A stretch of DNA of 64,000 nt from Convolutriloba macropyga (Eukaryota): positions 17,670,001 to 17,734,000 of the forward strand of contig NC_134469.1 in NCBI RefSeq assembly GCF_964194025.1, read 5' to 3'. The translations under genes were made by a program, and so were the position numbers. Numbering within the stretch: position 1 is the stretch's first letter; every line of letters starts with the position of its first letter. The notes below the pieces were generated by a model. That model was not told the DNA's origin. It was given only the letters and a program-made list of their open reading frames with translations, and did no database searches. Shown in pieces: positions 335 through 25,229 of this stretch.

Positions 335-3300
335 ATGAGGCTTTTGAAGTTGTGGTACAGCTTCTTTTATTGTTTCTGGATGGGTATTTATGGAGTGGCT
401 GCCTTTGTGCCTTATGTGGACTTTGAGGCTATCGAGCAACTCACTCAATCAGATCTGAGCCTCCTGTTCCCTGTTGACGAAATCACAGGTAAAACACTTT
501 TATTACAACTATTTACTTAAGGGGTCCTTCACACTATAACCCTTGCCCCCCACAAAATTAAAGCTTGGGGGGGGGGGGGGGACAAACAGAAAACATCCAG
601 AGATCTTCGTTGACGCTTTTTGCTTAAGGTAGAAAAGACAGCATAATAGTGGATACAGTGTTCAAAAGTCAGGCACTGGCAGGCACAACATGCGGAGACC
701 ACATTGAGATCATATTCCAGTGTATCTTCCATGTCCATCAGAACCAACAGGAGGAAGAAGCTCACAAGAAGCGTTCCTTCCAAATAATCGATGCATGGGG
801 CAAAACAGAGTCTGGCATAACCCAGGGTAACCTTAACTGGCTAGGGCGACCTTCACTCTGCAAGCTTACGTTCCAAGTAGATGACGGATCAGTTTCGTAC
901 ACTTTTGACTTTTTGGCCAGTATCGTACAGTTTAAGCTGGCAGGTGATCATGTGAAAATCCGGCTCTTCTCTTCAAGTTGAAAGTGAATCTAAATATATA
1001 TATATCTACCTGCAGTAGCCTAAATTACGGATCCTAATGTTTAGCAAACGATTAGAGCAAGTTCTTACGAACACTCGCCAGTGAAAACTTGGAAATAAAA
1101 TGAGCTTTGGTAAAAGTAACAAAAAATATTTACAGTCAAGGTCTGAGATAGATCGAGAGTGGTAATTTTGAAATTCATTGTCCTGTGATTATTTCTGTTT
1201 TTGAAGAAAATAATTAGAGAGCAATTTTTGAAATGTGATTGTTTTGGAGTCGGGGGCTTTACGATAATAAGAAATTGTTTCGTTATTTTTCAAGAAATTT
1301 TTGGTCTTTCCCATTATAGCCCCCCATGAAACTATAGCCCCCCATTATGGTATAATTACCATGATGGGGGGCTATAGAATATCTGACGACTAAGCTGGGG
1401 GGGGGGGGGGGCTATAATGGGAAAGACGCGAAATTTTGTTTTTGGAATTCGAAGGTATCATGATCAAACAAGTGCATTCAATGCATCGTGGGAGAATGTT
1501 CTTGATACAAATAAAATTTAAAAAACTTCAAAAACAGTTGGGCACCAGATTAGAAGCTATTCTGCCCCCCCCCCTCCCCCCGACCCCTCACTCACAAATT
1601 ATGAGTATTTATGTAGCTCTTTACTATGTAAAAATGTAGCAGGTGCGCCTTTGTTTGGAGGCGTAAAAGTAGTATGATGGCAAAGCTGAAGGTCACACCA
1701 GATCATGAAAAATCTGACAACCTGCGCTGAAATCCTAAAAGAGAGCTAATGAAAGAAAGAAGCTGTTTTCCTGTTTTCCCACAGATAAAGATGGTTTTGT
1801 CATTCTTACATAGGACACGACAAATGTTTGATATCACCAGCGTATGACTAAAAATTATGCCCATATAAGCTCTATATTCTGATATTTCCGTGCTCATTCC
1901 AGTTCCATAAACACATTTTTCTATTCTCAATATCACATTTGAAGCTATTCCGATTTCCCCTTCCCCAATGTTTTTACAACCCCCACTTACAAATTATGAG
2001 CAGTCATGTAGGTCGTCACGACTTTAAAACTGGTAATAAATTTTTCCATCAGCGAAATTGCTAAAAAGTTAATGAAAAGTTAGAATTCAAAACCGTTAAA
2101 GTTTAAGTATCTTACATTGAGAGCGTTAAATGTGTTTAAGCCAAATAATATCAACGCTAAGTTTTCCTAACTAAAGTTTTCAGCGCCAAATCTTTCATAA
2201 ATTTAACGCCTTTGCTGCAAAGTTTGCAAGAAAACTTCTCAAAAAATTTCTCTTCCTAGGTTTCAATTTCTCAAACTCTGACATGCTGCTGATTTGTATA
2301 CAACTGTGCGCAAACGAGTTGAAATTGACAAAAAGATGCTTCACTCCCATTAAAATTAAAGAAGTCGCCTGATTGATTGACGGCTTGAGCGTTATTATGA
2401 TAAGAAATTTAGGTTTAGAAAACCACCATCTAATTTTCGAAAAAAAACTGTGAAAGCAAATTTTGTTTAAAACCCATTTTGTTTAAAACAAAAGAATAAA
2501 TTCATTCAATTATTTGATTTATTCAATCAAATAGAGATAATCTAACGCATCCTTTTATTACTTAGCGGCGTTGCTAATTATCATTTTTAATGAGATACGC
2601 ATCAATTCAACGTTTTTTCTGAAATACTGTTTTTGCTCAGTTACAAAGACTGACTGTACATGACCCCAAAATTTTTTTGAGATATTAGGTGTGGTCAGTA
2701 ACTTAGATTCAGTATGTTCGGTTTTATACGCAAGAAATTGTACGTTTTTTATTACAAAATTGAGTTTTTTTATATATAATGTAGTCAAACGTTATGTTGA
2801 ATTTATAATCACAGGAGTTCCAAACGTACCTCTGGAACATAATTTTTGAAAAAAACAAAATTTGGTCGGCTTCCTTCTTTAGCTCATTTATAAAGCTAGA
2901 TGCACAAATTTCGATATTGTTTGTTCTGAAGTTGAAATTTTAAAAGAAGCGTTAAACATTAACGGGGATTCATTTCGTTGAACCACACTCACTGAGTCTT
3001 GAAATGGTCATGAAAAATCAAGTACGCAAGTACTTTTCTCATGATTTCCTATGTTTTGAACCCGAGCATATCAATGGTTTATTCCGTTAAAAACCAAACA
3101 TTCCGAACTGCCGAAAATGAATTTAGCAAATTTAAGAAACCTAACATAACGACAATTTTACGTTTAAAGTGAATATACGGAATCTAAGAGACTAAACATA
3201 CCGACAACTTCTTTCGTTTAAAACCGAACATACCGACGGTAGCAAAAAATAAAACATAAAAATTTTTGTCGTTTATGTATAACCAAAACCGAACATGTTG

Positions 3301-6300
3301 AAAATTTTCTCAAGTTTACAAACGACTGTTTCTGATAGGATCAGTATAGATTGCTACTGAATTGAGCAACAACATTAATAATAGAAAATAGGAAAAGAGC
3401 CTTTGTTAAGGGGCGAACTACACCAACCCCCTCAAGACCAAAATCAACATAGTCCTGTGTCTCCCAGCTGACTGTCAAGCAGGACATCTCATGAAGTTGT
3501 TCAATGTGTCCAGATCCAATTTTCAGGGAACTGTTTCTACAATTTTTTCACTCTTCTTCTAATGAACGGCTTTAGGAGAACATACCTTTTTTTCTTCAAA
3601 AATTATGGACCGCTACCATGTATGAATTGGCACGACTAAAAAACTCGATTAAATATACTCGTATTATTAAGCGAAATCCGGTTTACAATCTTAACGAGTG
3701 TTTCCAATTGGGTTTATGCTTTCAATTTTTGCTTTTTTCAACAATTCATACCATACAAGGCAATATTTTCTTATATTACCATATAAGAAAATTTCTGTTA
3801 TGTTTTACTATAAGGAAAATCGGATCAAACTAATTAATACAATTAAGAAGTAGTTAAACGCCATTTTGGTAAGCAAAACCAAATAGACTAAATTTCGCCA
3901 ATTCAACTATGGCACTTGTAAGGGAAATTCTTGATAGTCTTAAATTTAGACTTCTACATTTATATATTTAGCGCAGACCAATATCTATCTGCCAAGTAAA
4001 TTCTTCTTCTCGATGGTGCGGGCTTTGAATTTTTTTAATCTGATATACTGCAATTAAATAGTTGCGAATGTAAAGTTTTTACTCCGCTGACTAAAATTGT
4101 GAAGTTACCATTTCCTAAATTTGTGAGTTTCAACACAGAAAACTGTAACAAATTCGCATTTTTTGTAACTTTTGATTTACTTTGATGAGAGAAACATTTT
4201 CCCTGTTTTCCCCATGAACAGCTGGAGCCACTGCGTGTGTACTTTGAGGACAATGGGGATTACAATGTGGCCTTCATTCTAGCTGTCATTGTATTGGGTG
4301 TATTTCTCATACTCGTCATTGCAGGTGACATAATCAATTATTATCCTCACGTTATTCATTCTTCATCAACAAACGTAATCTGAGGAGCCAAAATGTCAAT
4401 TCAAGCAATAAATATATTAATTGGATTGGACAGCAGCTTTTCCGAATTTTACAGAATACATGGAAAACTGTTGATCATTTTCTAGAATTTGGATTACTAT
4501 GCGGGTATAATCAGATTAAAGTAGACTTTTTAATATTGGCTCAACTGTTTAGAACTGTCAAAAATCAGAATTGATGACAGAAGTTCTCGGTTTTCTAAAG
4601 GAAATAGAATTGAAGTTAAGTTTTAATCTAATTAGGTAATAATCTATTTTTTGATTTCTGGTTTTGAAAAAATATGTGTAAAGTACGTGTAACTAGTTGC
4701 TTGCAAGATTCTTGCAAGTTTCTATATTCATTTGCAAGAATCTTGTAAGCTTTTTCATTCATATGCTCGGGAAAGGGGGCCGCCAGAGAGGTGAAGTGGA
4801 TTTTTGCAGTAAAAAATTGAAAGATTGTTTTGAATCAGCTTGCAAGATTCTTGAAAGCCTTAAATTCACTCATCACTAGGGGTGGCACGAACGGGAAAAT
4901 GCCAGATTTCATCGANNNNNNNNNNNNNNNNNNNNNNNNNNNNNNNNNNNNNNNNNNNNNNNNNNNNNNNNNNNNNNNNNNNNNNNNNNNNNNNNNNNNN
5001 NNNNNNNNNNNNNNNNNNNNNNNNNNNNNNNNNNNNNNNNNNNNNNNNNNNNNNNNNNNNNNNNNNNNNNNNNNNNNNNNNNNNNNNNNNNNNNNNNNNN
5101 NNNNNNNNNNNNNNNCCCGCTCATCCACATTCTTGACTTAATTGGCTACCAAATAATGAAAGCGATATATATTTTTTCAAAAAACATACACATCGTTCAA
5201 TAAACAACCAATGAAATACGATAACGCCATGCTAGAGGGCCAATGAAAATAGTTGATGAAAATAAGCTGAGGATTACTAGAAAGGACAAAAATGAAAATC
5301 AAACAACAAAGATTATTTACGACCAAAACTATAATAAAGTCTATATAAAGTCTATAATAAAATATATTAATCAAATCTATAATAAAAAAATCATAACAAA
5401 ATCAAACTCGCATCAGATAAAAACCAAAACATTTAAACCTATATTTCATTAGAAAAAACATGGACGTGTTTTCAATGCGATTGGTTAACAGGTAGACAAA
5501 AAGGAGGAAATAAGTGCGAAGTTCAAAAATACTTTTCCATTTTTGAAATCAATTAATTGCACAATTATTATTGTCATTACATATCAACTGAAAACACTAA
5601 AATGTTCAGTTATATCCACATAGGAAGCAATTGAGACAAGTCACTATCCAATGTTCGATGGCGCAAATTTTCAATGCCAATGGACCAACGATTATTGTTA
5701 TAATTTAAAAAGAAACCAAAAATTTTATGAAATATAGAAAAATATAAAAATATAACATTTTACCAAATCTCGTGGTAGCAAAAGTAACAAGCCAAGAAAC
5801 GAACAATTTCTTTCAACAAAAGCCGTTATAACGATTAACATATAGCTCACGGGAGACGCACTGTTACCTGTTTACACTGAGCTACAAATCAACCGAAAAA
5901 CTCTATAAAAAAGACGAAGCTCAAAAACCCAAACTTATTTTTGAAAACAGATATATTCAAAAGTCAGAATAGACTAAAAACATACAACAAAAAGTGATGG
6001 ATTAAGTTTCAACAACTCATGAAGCCAATTGGACCTGTAAATAATGAGACTAAGTAACGAGCCCACAAACAAACGAATTCGTAAAGAAGCCAAAACTTCG
6101 AACAATTTTGCAACATGACACTGCTCAATGCACTATTATATGATGTAACCTGCAAGAACTAAAAATCACTATTTTCTTTTCATCTTAACATCAACGAATC
6201 CTCCTTATAAAAGGACTACTTCGACGTGACAACAAAAAGAAAACCGAAAATTGTACATAATCTCGAAATTTTTAATTAAAATAAAAGGTCGAAGCAATCA

Positions 6301-9300
6301 GTTACAACGCATAACCCAGCGCCAATTTTTATTTCGAATCAACAAAAGTATTTGATAACTCTAATAAGTGAGATAGAGTAACATGGTGACGAAAATAAAA
6401 GAGAAAAGGAGACAAATGAAAAAAAAATCTTTTTTTTTTTAAATTTTAATTCGAAAGTCGTTAGAACAAACAGCTTTAAGTTGAAATCTTCAACTCGGTT
6501 GCGTTATACGTCTTTGGGAAGCAATTAAGGTCTATCGGTATTGGGTAAATGGCGTACAACAACGAAAAGAAAGACAAACTTAGGCAAAATCAAAAACCCA
6601 CAAAATTTTGCGAGATAACCGTGTCTCAGCCCAAAAAGCAAAACTATTCAACAAAAACTATTAACACGCTAGATACGCCTTTTTCCAACGTTATGCATTT
6701 TTCCTACAATCCCTTCTTTTATTTGGACTTGTCAGAAGTGTGATAGTTCGACAAGAAAACAAAATAAACATAAAATTTGCAATTTTGCTAAAAAAAAAGA
6801 AAAATTGAGAACACATAGTACCAAAATAATGAAACATTTAGTTGAATTTAAAACCCTTGCCGACATTTATTTATTCATCAAAGGAAGCCGGTTTCCAATT
6901 ATATTTACTGAGAATGCGCCCAAAGTTGAGAGAAAAAAGAAAAATAATGGCAAAGTTCAGAAATTCACCGACCTTTTTTCAAAAAATATATATTCAAAGT
7001 CTTAACAGACATTAGATAACAACTGAAAAAAATGTCTAGGTTCTTTTATACCTTCTTGAAAAGAAATGGAATTTTAATTGGGGACACTAAGTCATTGAAC
7101 TACAAAAATCATAAGAAATGAAAACAAAACGCAAGAAGTCTATAAAGTCTTTACGAAAACAATTCGTCAGAGCCATGAAAACCGTGAGCTTAATTCTGAA
7201 AACATAATATAATGTAGCTCGTTCTTATTTCTTGTAATTAATATCTGTCAATAATTAAGCCCTGATTTGAATATCTTGTCCGTAATTTACATAATAAACG
7301 TTTACATAGCGGAAAATGTTTGAAAAAAAAGTTCGCGCCCCATTAAAATCTAAAAAAAATTTCATCAAAAGGATTCATGGTGAGATCAAGATCAGCCCAG
7401 ATATTGCTGAGCGTCTGAAAAAACACTCAACTATTGAAATTGGTGCAAAATAGATCAATTCTATACAAAACTGTAAGTTTGTCAAAAATAAATAATGCAT
7501 TTTGTATATTTATCGACAACAAATTTGCCAAAAAATTGAACAAATTATAATTTCAGAAGACTCTTATAGCCAGCTGAAGTACAACTAGCTCTTTTTGAGA
7601 TTAAAACGATTATGGTTGCAAATTAAAGGTGTCTACTTCCAGCAAAATTAAAGCAAGTTGGCTAAAAAAAAGCCCTTTTTCGACGAAAAATTTCAGAATT
7701 TTGAAAAAAATTAGCGTAAATTTTAACCGAAGAACTCATATCCTGCAGTTCAGCAACCCTCCTCTATCTTTAAATATAATTTAAATAACATTACAATTAA
7801 CAATTTTAAAATATTTTGGCATTAATTATGAAAATTTGGTCAAAATTGACGAAATTTTGGTCAAAAATGTGAAAAAAGTAGCTGAATTACGTCTAATATT
7901 CACAAAATTTTAAACCTCGGTCCTATAAAAAACAAAAATTGAAAAAATCTTTTTAGTTCCATATTCTACACTGGACGGGCTTTCTAATGATACCACTCAC
8001 AGCTCTCTACGATTATTATATCGATCGGCCAAAATTGACTGAACAAAAAAAAACCGTTTGAGTTTATAGTTCCTCCCCCCCTCAGAGAGGGGTCGGAACA
8101 ATTAATATTGTTGTATCCCAGCAAGATAAAGACTGAATGTTAAGCATTCCGAAAAAATTTCTAAAATTCTTCCACCGGGAAAAGAAACTAGCTTGAGCTG
8201 AATAAGAGGTCAATAGTTCTCGAAAAACCTATAGTTATTATTATTGCCCCTGATAATAATTTTTTAGGGTGGACTTGGTTCTCAGCAGTGGACTTCCAGC
8301 TTTTCCTTCTGATGGCTGGACTTGTTTATCTCGCATTCAAGCGACCAGTCATCGGAATTGCAGTCGTCTGTGCCCTAGTCGGAGTCTGCATCATAATTAC
8401 AATGATCTTGAGCTCAGTGTATGACCTCCCCCCTGGAGCAACCGCTGGGTTTTTCCATAACGAGTTGTACAGAAAGTATAAAAACACGTGGCAATATTTC
8501 AAAATAATCTACAATAAACCCTACACTCGATTTGCAAGCTATGGTTGCGGGGTCGTTTTGGGTATTGTCATATTCTCCTATCCACAAGCCCAGAGAAATT
8601 TACCCCGAATCGCTGCAATTTGTTTATGGTTTACCGCAATTGGGTTGCAAATGCTTTGTTTATTTTGTGATTACGGTCTGTTTAGTAAGAAGTTTCCCTC
8701 GAAAGGAGGTGCTGCAATGTTTAATGGTTTGCTTCCCTTTATCTGGTCGATGACTATATTCTGGATTATTTGGGCTTGTTGTCAAGGTTACGGGGGTCCA
8801 GCTAATACTTTCCTGTCAATTTATTTCTGGAAGCCACTCGGAAGACAGGAGAGATGTTTCCTGTGATAATAAAATTTTCATTTCATAGTTCGTCTTTTTT
8901 CCAGGAAAGCTTAATCTTTCCAAACTTAAAAAAAGACACTCAACAGAGCAAAATAGTCTTGGGAAAAAATCAATCTTTGTATAAACGTGAATACAGAATC
9001 TCAACCGAGCACTGAATAAATAATAATTTATAATAATTTTGGTTCCGGCGTAATCGCCGCGGAATAGCATTAGGCTACTGCGGCCTGTTCTCACCTATCC
9101 TTTTTCTTATTATCCCCCACATTTTAGACTGTTCATTTTATGGGCAGCATTGCTTTTTTTGGTGACTATGGCACTTTTTTTGCGTCTGAGACTTTCACGT
9201 GGTACCATTATTGCAGCCAACATTGGTCAGGCTATGGTCAACCTGAAGCTATGGTTAAGTAAGAGATCATCCTGACACAGAAAGCTTCACGGAGGCAGGG

Positions 9301-12300
9301 GATTGAACCCTTAATCATTGGCGTGTGACTCACACACCTTACCGGCTTAATAGGGTTGACAATATCAGCATACCATGTGATCAGGAAACACTTCTCTGTA
9401 TTGGGGTGATAGGTATTTATGATCTACCTTATCAACTGTCTCGTGATCCAGTTCTACTACACCACCAACGAGGGCGACTTCCACCTCACAAACTGGTCTC
9501 TCTTCGTCTTCTTCATCGGAAACTTAGGCATCTTTTCATTCTTCAACTACACATTTTTACATTTTTTCCCATTCGGATTCCGTTCTGCAATAAAACAATT
9601 ATACCATTATAGTCGGTACGCTTTTGGTAAATAATCTTTACGCTGTTGCAATCATTTTGAAAAATGAATGTCCAGAAGATATTTTTCATATATTTGTCTC
9701 ACACAAATTTTTTGGCTAAAACTCATTGTATGCAGACATCGTATGCAGACATACGATTTAGATACGATCTTTCTCATATCAGCCTCATATAATTGTTGGC
9801 TTAAATTCATCGTATGCAGACATACAATTCATCATAATGAATTTTTGAAGTTGCCAGAGTAAATTTTTCTGATTTTTTTTTGTACGGAGGCAGTAATAAA
9901 AACATTATTGGCTCTTTCAGGGTTTCAATTCGTTAAGTTTCTGTAAATAAGATATGGCACCAGATTTTTCCAATAACAAAAGTTTTTCGAATCAAAAAGT
10001 GTAAAATATTGATTTGGCCTGTCATATAGACTCTCAATATATGCATTGGCGCTTTGGAGCTGCTTGTTTCAAAAGCTAAAGCTGAAGAATATCGTTACCT
10101 CAGTAAAAACATACAACCAAGAGTATTGTACAGGAAACACAAAAATGTATCTTCATAGCAAAACAACTTTCGAAGAAATTCTGTGGCTCACTTCAAGCCT
10201 TTTAGCTATTATGTGGCTTGAAGCTCCTATTAGCAGCTAAATTAATTTGCACTAGCTCAAAAGTAGTAGAAAGCATATGACATTTCAGTTGATTAAATTT
10301 AGTAATCAATGAAAGAGTCCATCATTTGACTCCTAATACGGGGACCTGACAGATTTTTTGTACAAAAATTTGAATAAATCCAAATATATAAAGTTATATA
10401 AGTGAATACAAACATTTCTTTCATAAAAAGAGTTACTATTACTCTAGTTTTTCTCTAAAAAAGATTTTCTGTTTTCGTTCCCTTTTTGCTGTTCAGTAAC
10501 ACTTCTACTCAAAAACGGAAGTATCAGAAGTTCATAATTGATTTGATCGAATATTAAGGCATTGTCCTAATCTTTATCTGAAGGTCTGCGACATGGTTAA
10601 CTCTGAACACTTGGCAACTCGTACTTAACTTTTAGGTTAATTCAAAGTTGGATCAGAGTGTTTTTCAGAAACAATTATTTTTACTAATTCAGACTCTGTT
10701 GATGTCACATTTTGCTCTGATAGTCTCTGATTCAGACTCTAAATCAAATTTTGATTTTTTTTCTGATTCAGAAGCTGAATCATACTCAGTTTTCAGTCTG
10801 AATTAGTTTAATTTCATGAGTAATTTCGCGGGCCAAGCTAGTTTTTTATCGTTGTTTTCGCTTTTACGTCCTTAGCTAATACAAATTCGTAAATACCTGA
10901 AGAAATTAAGAAAGTTATTTATAGTCGGAAATTTTCTCAAGTTAAAAACTGACTTTGAGATTTTCCAGTTTGCCCTGGATGGTTTTAACCACCTCTTTTC
11001 TTTTTTCCCGGACTTGGGACCGTTAGCGTGTACATACATAAATAAACTATAAGAAAGCTGATATTGCATGGTAAAAACCCGTCTGTAGAGTTTTTCAAAA
11101 CAAAACAAGACATAACAAGGAAAAACGAAATTAAAATAGCCAAAAGGATGTCGGATTTTTTCTCAATTCGAGTAAAAAAAATCTGTCGAGATTTTCCAAT
11201 ATTTCTGGAAGGTTTTACATTTCTCTTTTCACTCCGGGCTTGGGACCGGCAGTGGTGGAATTTCATTTTGATTATGAACATTCTGCTCATTCTGCTGCAA
11301 ACAAGTAAGTTTACAAGCGCCAAAAATTAGTTTTAAAAATTTTCACATCGATTTCGACATCGCAGTTTGCTTTTATGGCACCCAGTGACCAAAATATATC
11401 ACATGTTAATTTGTGAAAAACAGTTTCAGTGCACAATGTTGGAGAAGATGAAAAACTGTGTAGATAACTTTTAACAAAATTTCCATGCTTTTTAGTATTC
11501 GATTCAAAATTGAGAACTTTTTTCGTATCATTTGGGTAAAAATTTGGGATATTTTGGCAATTAGGTGTTTTGATAGTGAGTGTTCTGAAACAGATTAAAA
11601 AAACAAACTTGAGCTCTTAAACATCAGAAAATACTATCGGACCGCTGAACATAAACGTTTGTCCCCTTCTATATGCAAACATGAGATTACCATTATTTGA
11701 TGGTCATCGGGGGTCATAGTGTCATCCTCATAACAGATACAATCAATATGTATTTGATGTCTGTTGCTGCCTCTTAGGCCATATACATTATTAATCAATG
11801 CAAAAACATGCATCAGGTAATAGTGAAGGATGCCAGCGTTTGGGTGTTTCTGCCCTATATGACAGCCCTGTCTCACCTGATAGCAATGTTCCTGACTTTT
11901 CTGTTCGACTTCCCGTTCGGGAGACTGGACGAGATGGTGACTAACTACTTGGATAAACAAGCCATTGAGGAGAAGGAGGCAGACAAGGAAAACGAGGGAG
12001 AGAACGAGGAGGGAGAGGAAGAGGAGGAACCTGAGAGAGGTTAGCTAATCATTCTTCAAACACAAATCTAAACAGCCAGCTACTTGTACTAAATATATTT
12101 TCATCATAAACTCGTAACCTCGATGTTTCTTAAATTAGTCTGCATATACCTCAAAGCTAGCCAAACAACACACAATTTTTTAGTTAAGGAAAAAAGTTTA
12201 ATATTTAACTCTTTTATCAAAAGTTTCTATCAACTTCGATAGCTCCTCGAAAAAAGACGAAGTTCAGAAAACTTCTCAAATTAATATTTCCCAGTTTCGA

Positions 12301-12556
12301 TTTGTCTTTTAAATGATGACTCAAAAGCACCTTTATCGTTGAAGATATCGACAAGTTAAGAAATCGCGTTATGATTCCTGCTATGCTGTTACCCCTCTCA
12401 ATTCACAAATAATTAAGGGTTTCGGTCATTAAATGTTTTGACCCTATAGGCACGAGACGAGGAACAGAAGGAACTGAGGGTACAAGGAGACGGAGGACGA
12501 ACGAAACAGCACCCGAGGGGCCTGAGAGGGAGTCCACTCCTACAGCTGAAGCATAA
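335..12556 (+). CDS. nrf-6: NRF-6-like (nose resistant to fluoxetine 6) O-acyltransferase, multi-exon gene; central exons not visible (gap)
   Basis: Inferred exons: 335-488, 629-943 (NRF motif IDAWGKTESGITQGNLNWLGRPSLC), 3411-3526 (VLCLPADC), 4222-4324 (EDNGDY plus TM helix), 8268-8848 (GWTWFSAVDFQ...YNKPYTR...WACCQGYGG...WKPLGR), 9413-9527, 11866-12039, 12450-12556. Phases are consistent and segments align co-linearly with the paralog at 50569-53047. AATAAA at ~12625. Confidence 0.8.
629..943 (+). CDS. NRF-6-like gene 1, exon 2 (NRF domain)
   Basis: DAWGK-x3-GI-x2-GN-x-NWLG-x4-C motif; acceptor tttttgcttaag, donor CAG|GTGATC. Confidence 0.8.
1304..1427. mobile_element. Small palindromic MITE-like element
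   Basis: Outer inverted repeat gtctttcccattatagccccccc / gggggggctataatgggaaagac, plus a nested near-palindrome ctatagccccccattatggta...taccatgatggggggctatag. Confidence 0.6.
8268..8848 (+). CDS. NRF-6-like gene 1, acyltransferase-3 domain exon
   Basis: ORF 8288..8866 extended to acceptor ttttttag; WTW..A.DFQ, Y.KP..R, GYGG and W.PL.R motifs are shared with the paralog. Confidence 0.9.
9285..9360 (-). mobile_element. Degenerate tRNA-derived SINE head (intronic)
   Basis: The - strand has a B-box GGGTTCAATCCCC at tRNA-like spacing from a degenerate A-box. Confidence 0.45.
9413..9527 (+). CDS. NRF-6-like gene 1, exon VFMIYLINCLVIQ...FIGNL
   Basis: Aligns without gaps to paralog TYMTYLVHILVIQ...FVANA. 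Confidence 0.8.
11866..12039 (+). CDS. NRF-6-like gene 1, last TM exon plus acidic tail
   Basis: LSHLIAMFLTFLFDFPFGRLD aligns to paralog LSYAFAFICVLLLESPVVGIE. Confidence 0.8.
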
Positions 12557-15500
12557 ACATTAAGAGAGAACAACAGCAGGAATTTCAGCTAACTGATGTA
12601 AGCTTAGCAGTATCAAACAAAGAAAATAAAGTTTTAAAGGTCACACAACCAAGGAAATCGATAATACCATTAGTTGTCTTTGAAAAACTAATAGCTATTA
12701 AATTTCTATAACTAGTTAGATTTCCTAAATATGACAAACTAACAGCTGAGTCGTTTTGACATCAGATAATGTGCGTTTTATTAACGAACAGTCTAGTTCC
12801 TAATAATTGGCAATTTATCCCGTCATCAAAATCTTAAAGTAGGAGCCCATGGTTTTTCAATCTCAGTGCACGACTGGAAGAAAAACAGATGTCCACTGTC
12901 GCAAAAAAAAAATGAAAACGTTCTATATCAATAATTACTATCACCCAGTGTATCACACTGTTAAAGGTCCAAACTCAAAACTTAGGCGAAGGAACTTTAT
13001 GCTAGCTGGAAAAATTTCTTTTCTATATAATGTGGCCAATTGAGAAGCAGAATTGATATCATAGAAATGCAGAAAAACAACTCAGAAAAGTGAAGAATTA
13101 TATTTATAAGTAAGATTATTTATAAGAACATTGTTTTTAGCTATGTTACAAAATAGTATTAAATACTTTTGCACAACACAATCTTTGAACATAATTCATT
13201 CCTTCAGCATAGTATTCGACTTTCTTTCATCTGGTTTTCTCGAAAATTTCGTCCTGATTTCTCGATACATAACCGACTACCGTCAGGCGAAATGCTCTCA
13301 AACGACTGGCGAGCGAGCTGTAGGCTTCGTCAGTAGCTAGCTGTGTCTGAGAAACTAGCTTAAGCTCAAATGATGATTGAGGAAATAGGGTTTAATAAGT
13401 GGGGTCGTAATTAAGGGGGTTGAGCGGAGTGAAGGCGGCAGAGCGTGCGAAGTTAGGGTTAGCATGCATGAGATGAGAAATGTGAGGGAAGGAGGGGGTA
13501 AGCGGAAGGACAGGACTGAGGGAGGTCTAAACCTTAAAATCACCTGCCCTTCACGTGATACTGTTATTTTTTGACAGTATCTTTGGTGGCTTGCGCTCTC
13601 AAATACGAAAATTAAATTGCCAGAAAAAAGTGTTTCAAACATTATCAGAAGAAAAATGGGTAGAGCGAAAAGTCACGTGAAAAGCCAACAGGACTAAAAT
13701 AATTGCTACAAATTTTAATATCAGCTACTAAGTGTTTTGGCTCTCTGCGTCCATGCAAGTTGTCGATTGGAAAGCAAACCTTTTTATCGGTGTTGTTTGT
13801 ACGGCACAATTTTTGCTAACGCTTCGATATTATCCACGCCCTAATTTAATAATTTAATTAAGAGGATCCCGATTGGTGAATGTATATTAACCAGCTGTAT
13901 TTTCCCCTTCTTGTAAGGAACACAACGTTTTCCCGGTTTTATATTTTTGAGGTCAAATTAGTTCTATCGTTAACTTTTGCCTAGAAAGTTTAAACTAGCA
14001 TCAATGAAAAACGATCGACTTTTGTTGAAACATTTTTTAACGGTTCTCCTACGCTTTTTCTACGCTTCAGATGAATTACGATTTTTTAAAAAAAAAATGT
14101 CAAAATCACAAAATCTCGCACAGTTCAGATTTATTTGATATTATTCCTTTAAGAATTTATTTAGTTGAATCATTGAATATGAAATCAACAAGGACAGATT
14201 ACGGGTTTAACAAACGCTGATTCAAGCTGTCCAAAGAAGGTGACATACAGCTAGTATCAATATAACAAAAAAGTTAGGCCCTTTGGAGTTATACCTTAAG
14301 ATTGAAAATTCAGTTCGTTCAACTCATGGTTATGTACTAGATATGGTTGGATTTTATGACCGAAACTTAAAATTTCAATTTTTGTAGGTAGACTCAAATT
14401 TGCAGGAATAATTCCAATAGACCTTAATTTATTAAACAGGAGAGCACCTCTCGTTCTTATTGAATATCTCTCGCGTTTTTTTCTGCACACTGGTTCTTTT
14501 AAAAAGAACCATTTTTCTAGTTCTAGTTCCCGCCGAACTATTGAGACTGAATAAACTACTATGGAACAACAGAGTGATAACTTTTGATTGTTCAAAAATC
14601 TTGGACTAAAAAAAGTAACATATTTAACTGCAATTAAGTCGGTTAGCACATTTTTACTGTCACTCGCTTCATATTATTGGCCTACATTTTCTAGATCAAG
14701 GAAGCCCAGAGCAAAATTTATTTTGCAGGAGCAAATTTAGATTAAAGCCATCTTTCTGTTTAGGATATAAATTCAACTTTTTCTCAATTGAGCATAAGCA
14801 GTGCAAAAAACGTTAAAAATAAAATTGTTTGGCTGACAATTTGTTGCTTTCTCCACGACATTAATTACACTTTCATTATGAAACGGTGCGTAACAAACTA
14901 TGAGAGCAAACAAGCATTATTGCACTTGCTGCCAGTACAAATTTTTCGAAAAAGTTTGGAAAAAGCATTAGGGATTTCAAACAATTATTCACACTATACA
15001 GAGTATTAAAAATTATAAGCAATAAGTTCGTGCTGACTGTTACATTGTTCAAACTGTTGTTCAATAACAGCTTTCATTTATTAACCTGAGGTGGAACAAA
15101 TTGAAAGTCATCTGCCGGCAATTGTTCCTGTCTGAGAACCAGTCAAGTGACTACAACTCTAATGACAAAAAGTAGAGTTATAGAATCAAAATAATAAAAC
15201 AGCGTCGTTTTGGGAATTAGAAATTTTGTTTAAAAATTAACCAATAGTTTTTAAAAATTTAACAGGTTTGAGTTAACAGTTTTATGCTAAAAACACCCAA
15301 TTTTTAGCGAGTAGTCTAAAATTGTATGCTCCAGCATTCTATTATCTTTAAAAGAAATATTTACTTATTTGTAGTACTTACAGTTATTCTAAAAGAAAAC
15401 AAGACTACAAGGCACAGTAACTGTTCCGACGTAGCCATTTTCTATACAAAAAGTTATTCCCCCGACCCAAAAAAAGGGGCCTGTCCCTCTCGAACACACA

Positions 15501-17735: not shown

Positions 17736-20312
17736 TGTAGTAGTCCTTAATTTTTGTAAAACGACATGGGAGAGGGAGAGTAAGATATATAATTTAGGTC
17801 AAATTAGACAAGTTAATTGGGTGTCTGAAGTAAGCGTTCTTTCATAAAGGGTTATTGTTTTGAAGGCGCCAGAGAGGTGATTTGAGTGATATATCTTAAA
17901 CAAACAAATTAATGAACAAAAGCATATTGAGCTGTCGAAATAATTTGATTAATTAGCAAAGTTGTATTTGTGCATCAGGCTAAAGTCGAAGTGAGTGATT
18001 TAAGTCAACTAGAGAGCGAAGATTTGAAGTGAACTAGATTCTTTGAACAGAATTGGAAACTCAATTTGAAGTAACCAAATGTGCTATTTTGAAGTGACAA
18101 AGATAAGGGGGTAGCAGAACTTGGTGCCCTGCAAATGTGGGAGTTATATTAAGCGGACGCTTATGAAATTTTAATGTCAGGTACACCCAATGATCCTCTC
18201 AAGCTGATACACCTTGTGGCCAACCCGACTTCCCAAACCCGAGTTATTAGCACCGGAAGTGGCGTGATTTGAAGGTTTTCGATATTTTGAATGAAAAAAT
18301 GACTGTTTGAGTATGATATAAAGCTAGTTAAGGGTTGCAACGGGTATCAAGTCCAGAGTACTGTACGAGATGATCATGGAAAAGGAGTAAGGATCACTTT
18401 TGGGTATTCTGCGGTGAATAAGCAGTTTTAGCGGAAAAATAATTAACATTTAAATTGAAATAGCAATTTCTCTAAAAGTTGAAGTCAGATTGACCTGAAA
18501 ATTGGGGGATAGACTAATTTGGGTACGAGGAATCCGATTTTGAACTCGGATTTGACCCCAGACCAACCCGCACGGAACTACCGCATGCAGGTGCTGCGGG
18601 ACGTAAAATTTGAATTGCTCGTGGAGTACTGGTAGTAGCATTATGATTTTTGGAGGGTTAGTGTAACTTTTCAAGGGCTGTCTAATGGTGCTATTTTTAA
18701 CTTCCGGGTGCGACCGGAAGTCCGTCACTCGGGTTGACCCGAGTGCCAAAAACCGGAAATTGGCATTTTTGACTGGCCGAATCATTTTGAAATGGTAATA
18801 AAATGATAACCTGAGACAATTAGTGACAAAAATACCCACCCCAGTCAATTTTGACGAACTCGGATTTTTCGGGTTTCGGCACCCACGACTCGTTAAAAAA
18901 TTTCAAATTGCAAACGACTCGCAACGGCTAATCGGTAGGTCACGAAACTTGGCAGGCATGTTAGTGGCACCCTATATTTACTAGAAAATTTTACCCGAAG
19001 ACGTTTTGACCACCACTTCCCGAGATATTGAGTTCTGAAATTTTGGGGTGATCAGTGAGGTTGATGAAAAGTGTGCGCGGTCATTGCTCGTGTTCTATTA
19101 AGATTTAGGTCATAAAAATTGGTGGGTATTTGTAACTATGGTAGGACTTTCCGCGCCAATAATTATTTTTACCAAATTGACCCTTCATCTTTCGCTCTTG
19201 ACCCCTAAGTGACCTCTAGAGGTCACACTTTTGGGCTTTTAGGAATATTAGACTTTTCGGCGTTTTTTTAACCGGGGAATTGCATGAAATAGTTTTAAAA
19301 TTGGAAAATACAATTGGTCTTTGGTTTAGGGTTGAGTTTAGTTATTTATTCAACGCATGATTTTTGACAGGGACTGATTGCAGCTAGTTAATTTGATAGC
19401 GGAAATAAAGGAACAAGAACTTTTCAGAGCAACGTCCGATGTTTACTATACAAACACTGATTGACATGTGAAGTGCAAACATGAGATAAAGTGTAGTGGA
19501 TTTGTTTACATAAGAGTCCAAAGGTCGTTTGTTTAAGATAAGGAGAAAGTTGAACAATGGTTGGTAGCAGTTGGATGACAGACCATAATTCGATATTGTT
19601 TGTTTGCGTAGCAAACAAAGCCCTCCTACAGAATGTGAGAGATTTCAAGTGTAAGTTACAATGTTTACTTAAGAGATTAAGGTTTGTTTGCTTAAGATAA
19701 GAGCGTATTCGTTGAGTATAAATTGNNNNNNNNNNNNNNNNNNNNNNNNNNNNNNNNNNNNNNNNNNNNNNNNNNNNNNNNNNNNNNNNNNNNNNNNNNN
19801 NNNNNNNNNNNNNNNNNNNNNNNNNNNNNNNNNNNNNNNNNNNNNNNNNNNNNNNNNNNNNNNNNNNNNNNNNNNTGGAGATTTTGGGAGAACTTCAGAA
19901 GTTTGATTTCGAACAAGCGAGAGAAAGTAGTTGGTTTAGTGGGACTAAACTTTAAAAGAATTGTAATTGCAAGACCAGTTGGGATACTGAGAGCGTTTTT
20001 GGGTTATTCATTTTGGGAAAGTGAACCACGGTTGTTGGTAATATTATTTTAATTGCTATTATAAATTGTCTTGAATTTGTCTTTTCCATTGATGTGCAAG
20101 TAATTTTCTTATGTGAATTAGTTATGTGAATTAACTTATTTCAAGGCAATCTAACTTACAACAGCATACAAGAGTGGAAGAGGGGAATTAGCAGAGTAAC
20201 GAAGTAACGCTTGCTTCACCAATTCAAAACCTTTGGTTCATATTATTTGATCGATCCTCTGGGCGACAGATTCCCCTCACTGTTGGCCTAGTCAGAAATT
20301 CAGAAGACGACA
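17736..20312 (+). repeat. 5' LTR (~2.6 kb, contains an N gap)
   Basis: Starts TGTAGTAGTCC, ends GACGACA; near-identical to 22579-25229. Confidence 0.93.
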
Positions 20313-20332: not shown

Positions 20333-20463
20333 TCATTTCTTTGTTACTTTTTGCTATAGATTATTTTCTGATAATTTGGAGAGCGTGCGATATTTTCCGT
20401 CGGCGAAACTGCTGAGAGCACACCGAAAATTGATTTACATTTGCGGTTTGGGTTACCAATAGT

Positions 20464-20877
20464 TTGATTATGTTTGATTATCAATTGGTGAAGCGTTTTC
20501 CTTCACCAGGCTACGATGTTTGGGAAGTTTGGCGTGAACATTATTTGAGCACTGGCATGAAGCTGGGATGGACGGATGAAGAGTTGATGAAGTGGTTGAC
20601 TACAAAATTGTGTGGGTGGGCTTTGAATGCAGTAAGTGATTTACCAAGAGGTTATTGGCGGTCGACTCCAGAGAAGCAAGCATGGACACTGACCGAGACG
20701 CTGTATCAGTTTGACATACGATTGTCTGACAATCCACTTTCTTATGAGCGAAGCTACAATTTGTTTATTAGAGGGAAAGCGGGAAATAGGACGGAATTCG
20801 GTGAAACCAGTGATACTGCAGATCAGAGAACACGACAGCAGTGTTCTCAAAGGCAGGTGATTGATACAAAAAAGTAG
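20464..20877 (+). CDS. Gag-like (capsid N-terminal) ORF of the LTR element, truncated
   Basis: WEVWREHY...LGWTDEELMKWLTTKLCGWALNAVSDLP fits the W..W...F......GW.D......L...L.G.A......LP pattern of Ty3/Gypsy gag; located right after the PBS. Confidence 0.6.
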   Translation: MIMFDYQLVKRFPSPGYDVWEVWREHYLSTGMKLGWTDEELMKWLTTKLCGWALNAVSDLPRGYWRSTPEKQAWTLTETLYQFDIRLSDNPLSYERSYNLFIRGKAGNRTEFGETSDTADQRTRQQCSQRQVIDTKK

Positions 20878-20955
20878 CGCTGGCGTTTCTTGAATTGATT
20901 AATTTCGGCAACCTGGCAAAGTTCTGAAGGGTTTGGTATTGGGTCCAGCTGTGGT

Positions 20956-22080
20956 TTGTCAAGAAAAGGAGCTTTCGGTAAGGATCTCTTTGGAGAAGTG
21001 GAAGATACGAGAGTTGCTGGGAGTTGTAGTAGAAGAAGAATTCCAGGTTACGGCGAAGCAGTGGAAACTGGAACTGAGGTAGAGTTTATGGAAGAAGTTT
21101 GTAGTCAAATGAATCAGGAAATTTATAGAGTAGCACTAAGCGAACATAAAAACAGTGGCTTGAAGGAAATTCTGAAATATGCTGTGGAAAAGGATTATGT
21201 ACAGTCGCCAGAGTCTGATGAGATAAGCGATGAACAGTCGGAGGATGACAATTTGTTTGAAGATATTTCGGATACAGATTTTTTGGATGTAGAGGAATTT
21301 GATGTCAACGATGCGAGAAGCGGGACAAATTTTGCCGCGAGTTTGAACTCAGTAGCATGCGACAACGTAACTGCAATAGCGAGCGATTTTGGTGGTGGTG
21401 TCAAAGCTAGCAGAGACGATATGTTGGGAGCCTGGGCCTTGATGGAGTTAAAGACAGGTGTGGTCCAGAATTTCTGCAATGCAACACACGTGGCTGATGA
21501 GACACAAATAAGTACAACTGAGTGCACTGTGGACACTTTGGAGAATTGGACAAGTTCAGGAGGAGTTGATCGGCAGTTTGTATCTGAAACACAGAACGGC
21601 CAAAACGATAAGGCAGTAGTTGACCGGAGTAATTTTGCACAGTTGGGAAAGGAGTTGGAGAAATGGGTGCAATCGCAATTGAGTGCAAGTCAGCTATGTG
21701 ATAGTGTTTTGGTCGAACCAACGGATGAGCATCAAGTGAAAAGTGCTGGAGTTGACAGAACAGGGAAATCTGATCACAATTCAATGACTACAGTGTTGCA
21801 CAGTTGGGTTCATGATAATCAACAGCCTAGGAGGGAGGACTCCAGCGGGTTTTTGGTGGAAGTTGAGCAGAATGTGGAGAGAAGGATTGCATCACGATTT
21901 CCAGAGATTGCAAAGCTGTTGCTGAAGAACCGATCGTTGAGCCAGAAGGAGAGGTGGAGCCGTTTGGAAGCATCAAGACAGCAGTCATGGCAGGATTACA
22001 CGAGAAATGGTAGCTACAGTGGAAGAAGAGGTGGACATCCATTCAAACATCTAAGGAAGAAGGTTTTCATGTACAGGTGA
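20956..22080 (+). CDS. Acidic 374-aa ORF of unknown function inside the LTR element
   Basis: Long open frame; no protease, RT, RNase H or integrase motif recognised. Confidence 0.55.
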   Translation: MSRKGAFGKDLFGEVEDTRVAGSCSRRRIPGYGEAVETGTEVEFMEEVCSQMNQEIYRVALSEHKNSGLKEILKYAVEKDYVQSPESDEISDEQSEDDNLFEDISDTDFLDVEEFDVNDARSGTNFAASLNSVACDNVTAIASDFGGGVKASRDDMLGAWALMELKTGVVQNFCNATHVADETQISTTECTVDTLENWTSSGGVDRQFVSETQNGQNDKAVVDRSNFAQLGKELEKWVQSQLSASQLCDSVLVEPTDEHQVKSAGVDRTGKSDHNSMTTVLHSWVHDNQQPRREDSSGFLVEVEQNVERRIASRFPEIAKLLLKNRSLSQKERWSRLEASRQQSWQDYTRNGSYSGRRGGHPFKHLRKKVFMYR

Positions 22081-22578: not shown

Positions 22579-25229
22579 TGTGGTAGTCCTTTATTTTTGT
22601 AAAACGACATGGGAGAGGGAGAGTAAGATATATAATTTAGGTCAAATTAGACAAGTTAATTGGGTGTCTGATGTAAGCGTTCTTTCGTAAAGGGTTATTG
22701 TTTTGAAGGCGCCAGAGTGGTGATTTGAGTGATATATCTTAAACAAACAAATTAACTAAAAAAAGCATATTGAGCTGTCGAAATAACTTGATTAATTAGC
22801 AAAGTTGTATTTGTGCATCAGGCCAAAGTCGAAGTGAGTGATTTAAGTCAACTAGAGAGCGAAGATTTGAAGTGAACTAGATTCTTTGAACAGAATTGGA
22901 AACTCAATTTGAAGTAACCAAATGTGCTATTTTGAAGTGACAAAGATAAGGGGGTAGCAGAACTTGGTGCCCTGCAAATGTGGGAGTTATATTAAGCGGA
23001 CGCTTATGAAATTTTAATGTCAGGTACACCCAATGATCCTCTCAAGCTGATATACCTTGTGGCCAATCCGACTTCCCAAACCCGAGTTATTAGCACCGGA
23101 AGTGGCGTGATTTGAAGGTTTTCGATATTTTGAATGAAAAAATGACTGTTTGAGTACGATATAAAGCTAGTTAAGGGTTGCAACGGGTATCAAGTCCAGA
23201 GTACTGTACGAGATGATCATGGAAAAGGAGTAAGGATCACTTTTGGGTATTCTGCGGTGAATATGCAGTTTTAGCGGAAAAGTAATTAACGTTTAAATTG
23301 AAATAGCAATTTCTCTAAAAGTTGAAGTCAGATTGACCTGAAAATTGGGGGATAGACTAATTTGGGTACGAGGAATCCGATTTTGAAGTCGGATTTGACC
23401 CCAGACCAACCCGCACGGAACTAGCGCATGCAGGTGCTGCGGGACGTAAAATTTGAATTGCTCGTGGAGTACTGGTAGTAGCCTTATGATTTTTGGAGGG
23501 TTAGAGTAACTTTTCAAGGGCTGTCTAATGGTGCTATTTTTAACTTCCGGGTGCGACCGGAAGTCGGTCACTCGGGTTGACCCGAGTGCCGAAAACCGGA
23601 AATTGGCATTTTTGACTGGCCGAATCATTTTGAAATGGTAATAATATGATAACCTGAGACAATTAGTGACAAAAATACCCACCCCAGTCAATTTTGACGA
23701 ATTCGCGATTTTTCGGGTTTCGGCACCCACGACTCGTTAAAAAATTTCAAATTGCAAACGACTCGCAACGGCTAATCGGTAGGTCACGAAACTTGGCAGG
23801 CATGTTAGTGGCACCCTATATTTACTAGAAAATTTTACCCGAAGACGTTTTGACCACCACTTCCCGAGATATTGAGTTCTGAAATTTTGGGGTGATCGGT
23901 GAGGTTGATGAAAAGTGTGCGCGGTCATTGCTCGTGTTCTATTAAGATTTAGGTCATAAAAATTGGTGGGTATTTGTAACTATGGTAGGACTTTCCGCGC
24001 CAATAATTATTTTTACCAAATTGACCCTTCATCTTTCGCTCTTGACCCCTAAGTGACCTCTAGAGGTCGCACTTTTGGGCTTTTAGGAATATTAGACTTT
24101 TCGGCGTTTTTTTAACCGGGGAATTGCATGAAATAGTTTTAAAATTGGAAAATACAATTGGTCTTTGGTTTAGGGTTGAGTTTAGTTATTTATTCAACGC
24201 ATGATTTTTGACAGGGACTGATTGCAGCTAGTTAATTTGATAGCGGAAATAAAGGAATAAGAACTTTTCAGAGCAACGTTCGATGTTTACTATGCAAACA
24301 CTGATTGACATGTCAAGTGCAAATATGAGATAAAGTGGAGTGGATTTGTTTACATAAGAGTCCAAAGGTCGTTTACTTAAGATAAGGAGAAAGCTGAATA
24401 ATGGTTGGTAGCAGTTGAATGACAGACCATAATTCGATATTGGTTGTTTGCATAGCAAACAAAGCCCTCCTACAGAATGTGAGAGATTTCAAGTGTAAGT
24501 TGCAATGTTTACTTAAGAGATTAAGGTTTGTTTGCTTAAGATAAGAGCGTATTCGTTGAGTATAAATNNNNNNNNNNNNNNNNNNNNNNNNNNNNNNNNN
24601 NNNNNNNNNNNNNNNNNNNNNNNNNNNNNNNNNNNNNNNNNNNNNNNNNNNNNNNNNNNNNNNNNNNNNNNNNNNNNNNNNNNNNNNNNNNNNNNNNNNN
24701 NNNNNNNNNNNNNNNNNNNNNNNNNNNNNNNNNNNNNNNNNNNNNNNNNNNNNNNNNNNNNNNNAGATTTTGGGAGAAGTTCAGAAGTTTGGTTTCGAAC
24801 AAGCGAGAGAGGGTAGTTGATTTAGTGGGACTAAACTTTAAAAGAATTGTAATTGCAAGACCAGTTGGGATACTGTAAGGGTTTTTGGGTTAGTTCATTT
24901 TGGGAAAGTGAACCACGGATGTTGGTAATATTATTTTATTTACTATTATAAATTGTCTTGAATTTTTCTTCTCCATTGATGTGCAAGTAATTTTCTGACA
25001 TTTGTTATCCATACAACTAGAATTGATATTACGAGCTCAATTGTGAATTAACTTATTTCAAGGCAATCTAACTTAAAACAGCATACAAGAGTGGAAGTGG
25101 GGAATTAGCAGAGTAACGAAGTAACGCTTGCTTCACCAATTCAAAAACTTTGGTTCATATTATTTGATCGATCTTCTGGGCGACAGATTCTCCTCACTGT
25201 TGGCCTAGTCAGAAATTCAGAAGAAGACA
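22579..25229 (+). repeat. 3' LTR (~2.65 kb, contains an N gap)
   Basis: Starts TGTGGTAGTCC, ends GAAGACA, followed by TSD CTATC. Confidence 0.93.

Follow-up and report, generated by a model that had tools for sequence, protein, structure and literature searches.

Three introns of an NRF-6/O-acyltransferase-like gene in the acoel Convolutriloba macropyga begin with GA, with GC, and with either GG or GT, have ends that can pair with each other, and interrupt the coding sequence at sites where the ortholog of the acoel Symsagittifera roscoffensis runs on uninterrupted. On balance, and with reservations, we favor the view that they are spliceosomal introns gained in the Convolutriloba lineage from transposons, in the manner of introners or of miniature inverted-repeat transposable elements (MITEs), and that their paired ends may be relics of those elements that still help splicing. 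The gene lies on chromosome OZ077300.1, within a stretch of 64,000 nucleotides (nt) (RefSeq contig NC_134469.1, positions 17,670,001 to 17,734,000) that we call the window and whose coordinates we use throughout. An initial annotation of the window had pointed to GG, GA, and GC donors, each paired with a segment just upstream of its acceptor; the letters and coordinates that it gave are correct, and the inverted repeats lie where it placed them. The three introns are as follows.

3527 to 4221, plus strand: intron 1, GG-AG with a cut at 3526/3527, GT-AG with the RefSeq cut at 3532/3533
8849 to 9412, plus strand: intron 2, GA-AG, in RefSeq; not in the ortholog or the paralog
9528 to 11865, plus strand: intron 3, GC-AG in RefSeq; not in the ortholog; rival in-frame GT donor at 9627

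Non-GT donors at lineage-specific positions

The joins proposed for introns 2 and 3, 8848/9413 (GA-AG) and 9527/11866 (GC-AG), are exactly those of the RefSeq model XP_075239645.1, and both are gap-free against the S. roscoffensis ortholog, which reads NNFQLEPQKVY, PLGRQAFMIYLI, and FIGNLALSHLIAM at sites 1, 2, and 3. Intron 2 has no GT that keeps the frame, as had been claimed: the GTs closest to the donor, at +8 and +15, would each break it, and GA-AG is the only reading of this intron that has an AG acceptor. Intron 3 has a rival donor, an in-frame GT at 9627 (TTG|GTAAAT) that would add 33 amino acids (aa); the 99 nt between the two donors form an open frame, and the GT may be an alternative 5′ splice site. 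GC-AG is in any case an ordinary minor intron variant. For intron 1, RefSeq (XP_075239283.1) cuts at the GT at 3533, six bases downstream of the GG, which adds Gly-Thr to the protein (SNFQGT|LEPL). Gly-Thr is absent both in S. roscoffensis (NNFQLEPQ) and in a third, acoel-like ortholog (L004/P0022; QNVTLLPEK), which favors GG at 3527, and the join proposed for intron 1 is likewise gap-free; we judge the two donors about equally likely.

The three donors (CAG|GAGAGA, TAG|GCATCT, and CAG|GGAACT, the last for the GG reading of intron 1) have a G at +1, an AG at the exon end, and a purine at +3, and all of the introns end in AG; these are the features of relaxed G*-AG donors. Other readings of the GA donor, as part of a stwintron, as a U12-type donor, or as a site of RNA editing, do not fit the letters, and at all three introns both the U12-type donor /RTATCCTT and the TCCTTAAC branch site are absent.

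Removing the inserts restores the frame exactly at all three sites. Across the exons that flank introns 2 and 3 (exons E–G, listed below), the proportion of nonsynonymous differences from the S. roscoffensis ortholog (pN) is 0.106 and that of synonymous differences (pS) is 0.86, which is saturated. This comparison argues that strong purifying selection has acted on the gene and that the gene can function only if the inserts are removed; together with the intact frames and the RefSeq models, it leads us to infer their excision from the RNA. Were the gene instead dead or dying, the inserts would be unspliced transposon insertions in a pseudogene, and the RefSeq junctions would be artefacts of alignment with the S. 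roscoffensis protein. A gap splits the gene and ~245 aa of its domain are not in the window, RefSeq has only two partial models of it, and intron 2 contains a high-copy repeat, all of which would suit a pseudogene. Against this, every exon is open and aligns without gaps to an ortholog that has diverged to saturation at synonymous sites, the inserts are common to a haplotype that is ~2–4% diverged, and frame is regained at each of the three sites; we consider a dead gene very improbable.

Nor does the DNA itself seem to be in error. Contigs (Logan) of four DNA runs from two samples have zero differing letters over 8076–9088 and 9314–12055. Because this range covers the GA at 8849, the GC at 9528, and the acceptor AG of either intron, introns 2 and 3 are not products of assembly error. 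GT at these sites in raw reads would have told against the unusual donors, and GA and GC are kept in all four runs. Depth is even, at 18–50 over exons and introns, and contigs cross the exon/intron borders, which identifies the runs as DNA. An independent contig from ENA (L001), which matches the window at 96% identity over 7.1 kb, agrees with it in donors and pairing arms. It is a second haplotype, with the divergence given above, and is identical in all arms, so covariation in the stems cannot be read from it. With four runs and a separate assembly in agreement, the chance that the organism has true GT donors at introns 2 and 3, obscured by an assembly or sequencing error, is negligible. L001 also has a 1-nt insertion within 9528–9626, which we considered as a reason to exclude the GT at 9627 and set aside: it lies in a T-run, may be a homopolymer error, and carries little weight.

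All three sites are uninterrupted in the genomic sequence of S. roscoffensis (contig L002), in which residues 511–823 of the ortholog form one uninterrupted open reading frame (ORF) and residues 201–266 another, so introns 1–3 are specific to the C. macropyga lineage. A paralog within the window (ORF 50569–52275, minus strand) is likewise uninterrupted at these sites, and the introns are absent from L004 as well, as expected of introns that were gained. The other introns of the C. macropyga gene have GT donors (489–628, 944–3410, one from 4326, and 12040–12449). Two of them, 489–628 (Cmac_A) and the intron from 4326, share their positions with S. roscoffensis, and 944–3410 (Cmac_B), a GT-AG intron at LAG|ANY, lies ~8 codons from a GC-AG intron of that species (2015–5558 in L002, between SPIK and TKIN), a displacement that could reflect intron sliding or independent gains. 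The remaining S. roscoffensis introns in L002 are GT-AG (1052–1818, 5752–9223, and 9962–10142). L004 has an intron of its own five codons downstream of the intron 1 site and lacks the one that C. macropyga and S. roscoffensis share at VIAG|T (VVAG|TSID). These differing positions point to high intron turnover in this gene among acoels.

Pairing between intron ends

In each of the three introns, an inverted repeat overlaps the donor and has its partner shortly before the acceptor.

3524 to 3538, plus strand: intron 1 stem, 5′ arm (CAGGGAACTGTTTCT); overlaps both candidate donors
4190 to 4205, plus strand: intron 1 stem, 3′ arm (AGAAACATTTTCCCTG); ends 16 nt before the 3′ AG
8845 to 8863, plus strand: intron 2 stem, 5′ arm (ACAGGAGAGATGTTTCCTG); top inverted repeat in 751 nt
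9382 to 9399, plus strand: intron 2 stem, 3′ arm (CAGGAAACACTTCTCTGT); ends 13 nt before the 3′ AG; when reverse-complemented, similar to the 5′ arm of intron 1
9527 to 9540, plus strand: intron 3 stem, 5′ arm (GGCATCTTTTCATT); weakest of the three
11822 to 11834, plus strand: intron 3 stem, 3′ arm (AGTGAAGGATGCC); ends 31 nt before the 3′ AG

Duplex energies were calculated in the windows that the initial annotation had suggested, donor (−5..+20) against acceptor (−50..−5), and compared with 2,979–8,938 random windows and with dinucleotide shuffles.

Intron 1: −18.4 kcal/mol; p=0.001 against random windows, p=0.0045 against shuffles
Intron 2: −22.0 kcal/mol; p=0.003 against random windows, p=0.015 against shuffles
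Intron 3: −16.0 kcal/mol; p=0.011 against random windows, p=0.046 against shuffles

Pairing, the significance of which the initial annotation had left in doubt, is thus modestly above chance (p of 0.001–0.01 for random windows and 0.005–0.05 for shuffles). Seven GT introns gave p=0.12–0.97 against shuffles, and the six of them scored against random windows gave p=0.27–0.96. The GC-AG intron of S. roscoffensis (p=0.04–0.08) has ends that pair weakly, partly via A/T runs. The sample, eleven introns of one gene family, separates by donor: each of the four non-GT introns has a stronger end duplex than any of the seven GT introns (Mann-Whitney p=0.003, with intron 1 counted as non-GT). When the donor is compared with the full length of its intron, no segment of introns 1 and 2 pairs with it better than the one before the acceptor; in intron 3 this segment ranks second. 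At 13–19 nt and with above-chance pairing, the stems have the character of terminal inverted repeats, with 3′ arms that are subterminal, 13–31 nt from the AG.

It could be that the donors are simply relaxed to G-N and that the stems arose by chance in AT-rich sequence. The stems are short and imperfect, each reaches only p=0.005–0.05 against shuffles that preserve composition, intron 1 holds 20 inverted repeats of about this size, its stem among them, and the stem of intron 3 is outside the top 25 of 142. In addition, the GT at 9627, which RefSeq does not use, pairs at 9626–9645 with 11834–11854, beside the 3′ arm of intron 3 (−17.2 kcal/mol, p=0.001). Against chance stand the combined probability of ~3e-4 over the three introns (Fisher's method on the shuffle p-values), the location of the partner just before the acceptor in every case, the complete separation of GT and non-GT introns by energy, and an arm motif common to introns 1 and 2 (see below). 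We regard chance stems as improbable.

A further reading, independent of how the introns arose, takes the end stem to be a selected and functional signal that stands in for U1/5′ splice-site recognition where the donor is not GT. Each stem includes both the donor and the last bases of the exon before it, every non-GT intron exceeds every GT intron in pairing, and when intron 1 is folded in full its stem is predicted with pair probabilities of 0.7–0.95. The exon-end AG has been kept despite synonymous differences from S. roscoffensis (CAA to CAG, TTG to TTA), and a candidate branch-like TGAT/TAAT lies just 5′ of each 3′ arm. However, a stem over the 5′ splice site should hinder pairing with U1 and U6, the intron 2 stem has a probability of only ~0.29 in its full fold, no compensatory changes are seen between the haplotypes, and for the two introns with arms of shared sequence, descent is a simpler account than convergence. 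Structure-guided definition of this kind is a possible but rather unlikely explanation. A class of introns in the Convolutriloba lineage that is defined by an intramolecular helix, formed by the 5′ splice site and a pre-acceptor segment, and not by U1 pairing, with a bare G...AG shown to the spliceosome and any +2 base allowed, seems doubtful to us; the branch-like TGAT/TAAT may then sit at the inner end of the helix.

The third species bears directly on this question. L004 is a metagenome scaffold (CHAS20-1) with an ortholog that is 57% identical, and its own intron (1891–2081 of the scaffold, 191 nt, at LLPEK|VYFED, a position not shared) is GT-AG. It contains a perfect 14-bp inverted repeat, TCTCACATTTTGTA / TACAAAATGTGAGA, set back from the intron ends: the 5′ arm begins 14 nt in from the 5′ end, and the 3′ arm stops 17 nt short of the 3′ end. 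With a duplex energy of −23.7 (p=0.006), the repeat closes the intron, which folds over its full length into a single hairpin. A strong end stem is thus found in a lineage-specific intron with an ordinary GT donor, which suggests that pairing goes with recent gain and not only with odd donors. The L004 case is easier to reconcile with relic terminal repeats than with a structure needed to make up for unusual donors.

Origin of the introns

According to the initial annotation, the three stems differ in sequence. This is incorrect for introns 1 and 2, whose four arms share a 14-nt motif, CAGGGAAnTGTTTC. A search of both strands of the window with CAGGGAACTGTTTC at up to 3 edits gave 23 matches, 4 of which coincide exactly with the arms of introns 1 and 2 and are oriented as expected, and a search with AGGGAACTGTTTC at up to 2 mismatches matched only the 5′ arm of intron 1 and the reverse complement of the 3′ arm of intron 2. 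The donor region of intron 1 also cross-pairs with the pre-acceptor segment of intron 2, at −20.4 kcal/mol. Shared motif and cross-pairing together point to common descent of the ends. The two readings that the initial annotation had offered therefore fare differently: relic transposon repeats are favored by the shared arms, the lineage-specific sites, and the L004 intron, and structure-guided intron definition is rated lower.

A transposon origin would involve the following steps. For each intron, a short non-autonomous DNA element with terminal inverted repeats would have inserted into coding sequence at an ...AG^ site and provided both the 3′ AG and a 5′ end that starts with G, with no requirement for GT. 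A spliceosome that, given AG at the exon end, tolerates any +2 base (as in Oikopleura and Eurytemora) could then remove the element. In the pre-mRNA, the former inverted repeats would pair the last 1–4 exon bases and first 12–15 intron bases with the segment 13–31 nt upstream of the 3′ AG, and this stem would bring the two splice sites together and might help intron definition. Both the transposon origin and any role of the stem in splicing are drawn from sequence comparison.

MITEs of the hAT type have terminal inverted repeats starting YARNG and 8-bp target-site duplications. The arms start CAGGG, CAGGG, CAGGA, and CAGAG, which we take to resemble hAT-type ends, an unconfirmed lead; no clean 8-bp duplication was found. 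Between the last eight exon bases and the last eight intron bases, introns 1 and 2 match at 5/8 and other introns at 2–3/8, a weak difference.

Several observations weigh against a transposon origin. The 64-kb window holds no other copies of the introns (a search with the arm motif for further copies of the element gave weak candidates, e.g., 49136/49371), and the 5′ 240 nt of intron 2 lie in a single-copy contig at k=31. There are no clean target-site duplications at the borders, only AG(G)/CAG repeats. The 3′ arms are not terminal, and the 5′ arms include the exonic CAG, which at site 1 is also present in S. roscoffensis and so cannot simply be element sequence. The pairing sample is small, the stem of intron 3 is weak by the shuffle test, and its rival GT donor pairs equally well with the neighboring segment. 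Intron 4 (12040–12449) is lineage-specific yet has a GT donor and no stem. Finally, the runs analyzed are all DNA, and RefSeq's odd junctions may stem from protein alignment rather than from reads.

To our knowledge, only larvacean tunicates and one copepod have been found to use non-GT donors at an appreciable frequency; the G*-AG introns of the larvacean Oikopleura dioica are similar to those described here. In Fritillaria borealis, in the summary that PMC11282704 gives of Henriet et al. 2019, introns at conserved positions are GT-AG and those at species-specific positions are non-canonical, with inverted repeats at their ends, a proposed MITE origin, and a spliceosome with changed tolerance. 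The non-canonical introns of C. macropyga are likewise lineage-specific with inverted repeats at their ends. The Fritillaria borders, however, are mostly AG-AC or AG-AT with clear target-site duplications, whereas those of C. macropyga are G(N)...AG with duplications that are at best vestigial, the 3′ arms of C. macropyga are subterminal, and their splicing is deduced from sequence. In the copepod Eurytemora affinis, introns with GA and GG donors always follow an exon that ends in AG, have a purine at +3, and are of recent origin (PMC5714493). The C. macropyga introns are like them in starting with G followed by A, G, or C, in the exon-end AG and +3 purine, in looking recent, and in breaking gene models. 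They differ in end pairing, which is not reported for Eurytemora; the Eurytemora paper (PMC5714493) mentions neither end pairing nor inverted repeats.

Introners, detected in no more than two animal groups when 3,325 genomes were surveyed (PMC9860276), offer a second set of parallels. Those of Amoebophrya are hairpin-ended and non-canonical (PMC7789003; reviewed in PMC11282704), and the introners of Amoebophrya and Micromonas resemble the C. macropyga introns in having complementary end repeats of 8–20 nt, hairpins predicted to join the exon borders, and aquatic hosts (PMC7789003, PMC9860276). Introners also have short direct repeats that overlap the exon/intron borders (PMC7789003, PMC9860276), where C. 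macropyga has AG(G)/CAG. In contrast to the C. macropyga introns in the window, they are defined by many near-identical copies, and the borders in Amoebophrya are highly variable, with U1 seemingly absent, as opposed to G(N)...AG. The nonconventional introns of euglenids, with end pairing that is often CAG/CTG and a suspected transposon origin (PMC11282704, PMC12501133), are similar in that pairing brings the intron ends together. A euglenid-type intron can nevertheless be rejected: euglenid introns lack G...AG borders and a polypyrimidine tract, whereas the C. macropyga borders are spliceosome-like, and they pair +4..+6 with −8..−6, whereas the C. macropyga stems pair −4 to +15 with −13..−44. 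Euglenid introns are also released as circles, by an unknown and probably non-spliceosomal route.

Our literature search returned no description of non-canonical or introner-type introns in acoels, and the S. roscoffensis genome paper is silent on them; we appear to have here a known kind of intron in a new lineage, apparently unreported in acoels. If a transposon origin is correct, acoels would be a further animal group, independent of those known, in which introns were gained recently and on a large scale under a relaxed splice code; a helix-defined intron class, if true, would amount to a structure-dependent splicing code in a bilaterian animal. The contrast within this one gene, between stemless GT introns (including those shared with S. 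roscoffensis) and stem-bearing, lineage-specific non-GT introns, makes it a compact test of whether the stem is a relic or a requirement.

Gene model and other features of the window

RefSeq breaks the gene into two models around an assembly gap, both of which we could rebuild exactly from the window: XP_075239283.1 from 335–488 + 629–943 + 3411–3532 + 4222–4383, and XP_075239645.1 from 8312–8848 + 9413–9527 + 11866–12039 + 12450–12556.

335 to 4383, plus strand: XP_075239283.1 (P0015), 250 aa; reads into an intron, with a stop at 4383
3411 to 3526 (to 3532 in RefSeq), plus strand: exon C, end of the NRF domain (...CLPADCQAGHLMKLFNVSRSNFQ); tblastn with the S. roscoffensis ortholog, weak Pfam NRF match, rebuilt from RefSeq
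4222 to 4325, plus strand: exon D, encoding the first transmembrane helix (LEPLRVYFEDNGDYNVAF...VIAG); GT donor of the next intron at 4326
4916 to 5115: assembly gap, between exon 4222–4325 and exon 8268–8848
8312 to 12556, plus strand: XP_075239645.1 (P0002), 310 aa; begins at an internal Met
8268 to 8848, plus strand: exon E (G-WTWFSAVDFQ...FWKPLGRQ), acyltransferase-3 domain; domain match, ortholog, rebuilt from RefSeq
9089 to 9313: high-copy repeat inside intron 2; summed word depth ~10^4–10^5 against 18–37 in the flanks, with contig breaks
9413 to 9527, plus strand: exon F (VFMIYLINCLVIQFYYTTNEGDFHLTNWSLFVFFIGNL + g); rebuilt from RefSeq
11866 to 12039, plus strand: exon G (A-LSHLIAMFLTF...EEPER + g); rebuilt from RefSeq
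12040 to 12449, plus strand: intron 4, GT-AG, without end pairing (p ~0.7–0.85); not in the S. roscoffensis ORF either
12450 to 12556, plus strand: last coding exon of the RefSeq model

The 192-aa exon at 8273–8848 falls in the same protein cluster as XP_075239645.1, 'nose resistant to fluoxetine protein 6-like' [C. macropyga]. Between 'VIAG' and 'WTWFSA', the S. roscoffensis ortholog XP_063713963.1 (P0005, 823 aa) has ~245 residues (~267–510) that found no match in 4326–8267 when the protein was compared with the window; this part matches only the minus-strand paralog. Most likely, the gap hides an exon of ~740 nt. Its flanks are then not continuous gene sequence, which explains the split RefSeq models; none of introns 1–3 touches the gap. 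Low BUSCO completeness has been stated for both acoel RefSeq genomes (10.64898/2026.04.26.720859). RefSeq splits this gene and joins part of it wrongly, and acoel annotations, which are used in debates about early bilaterian evolution, would probably benefit from gene finders that allow G-N donors.

Protein searches returned the RefSeq fragments of this gene, one full-length and evidently intronless paralog (XP_075243252.1), and foreign homologs. The paralogous NRF-6-like gene in the window (50569–53047, minus strand) consists of a 568-aa single exon, the ORF already mentioned, and one GT-AG intron (52792 to ~52447); a change of frame near 52330 is either a 35-nt intron or a frameshift. An ENA gene call on L001 (P0001) reads the TGA at 8864 as Trp (ERCFLW); the caller's code evidently treats TGA as sense, and there is no real readthrough.

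A second very high-copy repeat lies at 7800–8199, just upstream of exon E, and the two repeats reach summed word depths of 10^4–5x10^5 against 18–50 for single-copy sequence. The repeat in intron 2 (~9089–9313) holds a tRNA-like GGGATTGAACCC stretch; an Rfam scan of 3000–13000 gave no match.

Elsewhere in the window, a RefSeq gene of 348 aa with a CCSAP domain runs on the minus strand from 16705 to beyond 22556, in a region with a 4.85-kb duplication (ORFs 18450–18848 and 23293–23730) and two gaps, and an unassigned 374-aa ORF lies at 20460–22080. A CCSAP-domain ORF (E=1.5e-10) is also found at 39021–39692 on the minus strand. From 56000 to 64000, repeat units ~640 bp apart hold similar minus-strand ORFs (MEDFYSEGRGFEPASGSLPFVDMKISTQHNAAC...) with strongly negative GC skew; the longest period set for TRF was 500, hence these repeats were not called by it. 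Long ORFs of a retroelement without long terminal repeats occupy 33000–37350 on the plus strand, with an endonuclease-reverse transcriptase match at 34861–36180.

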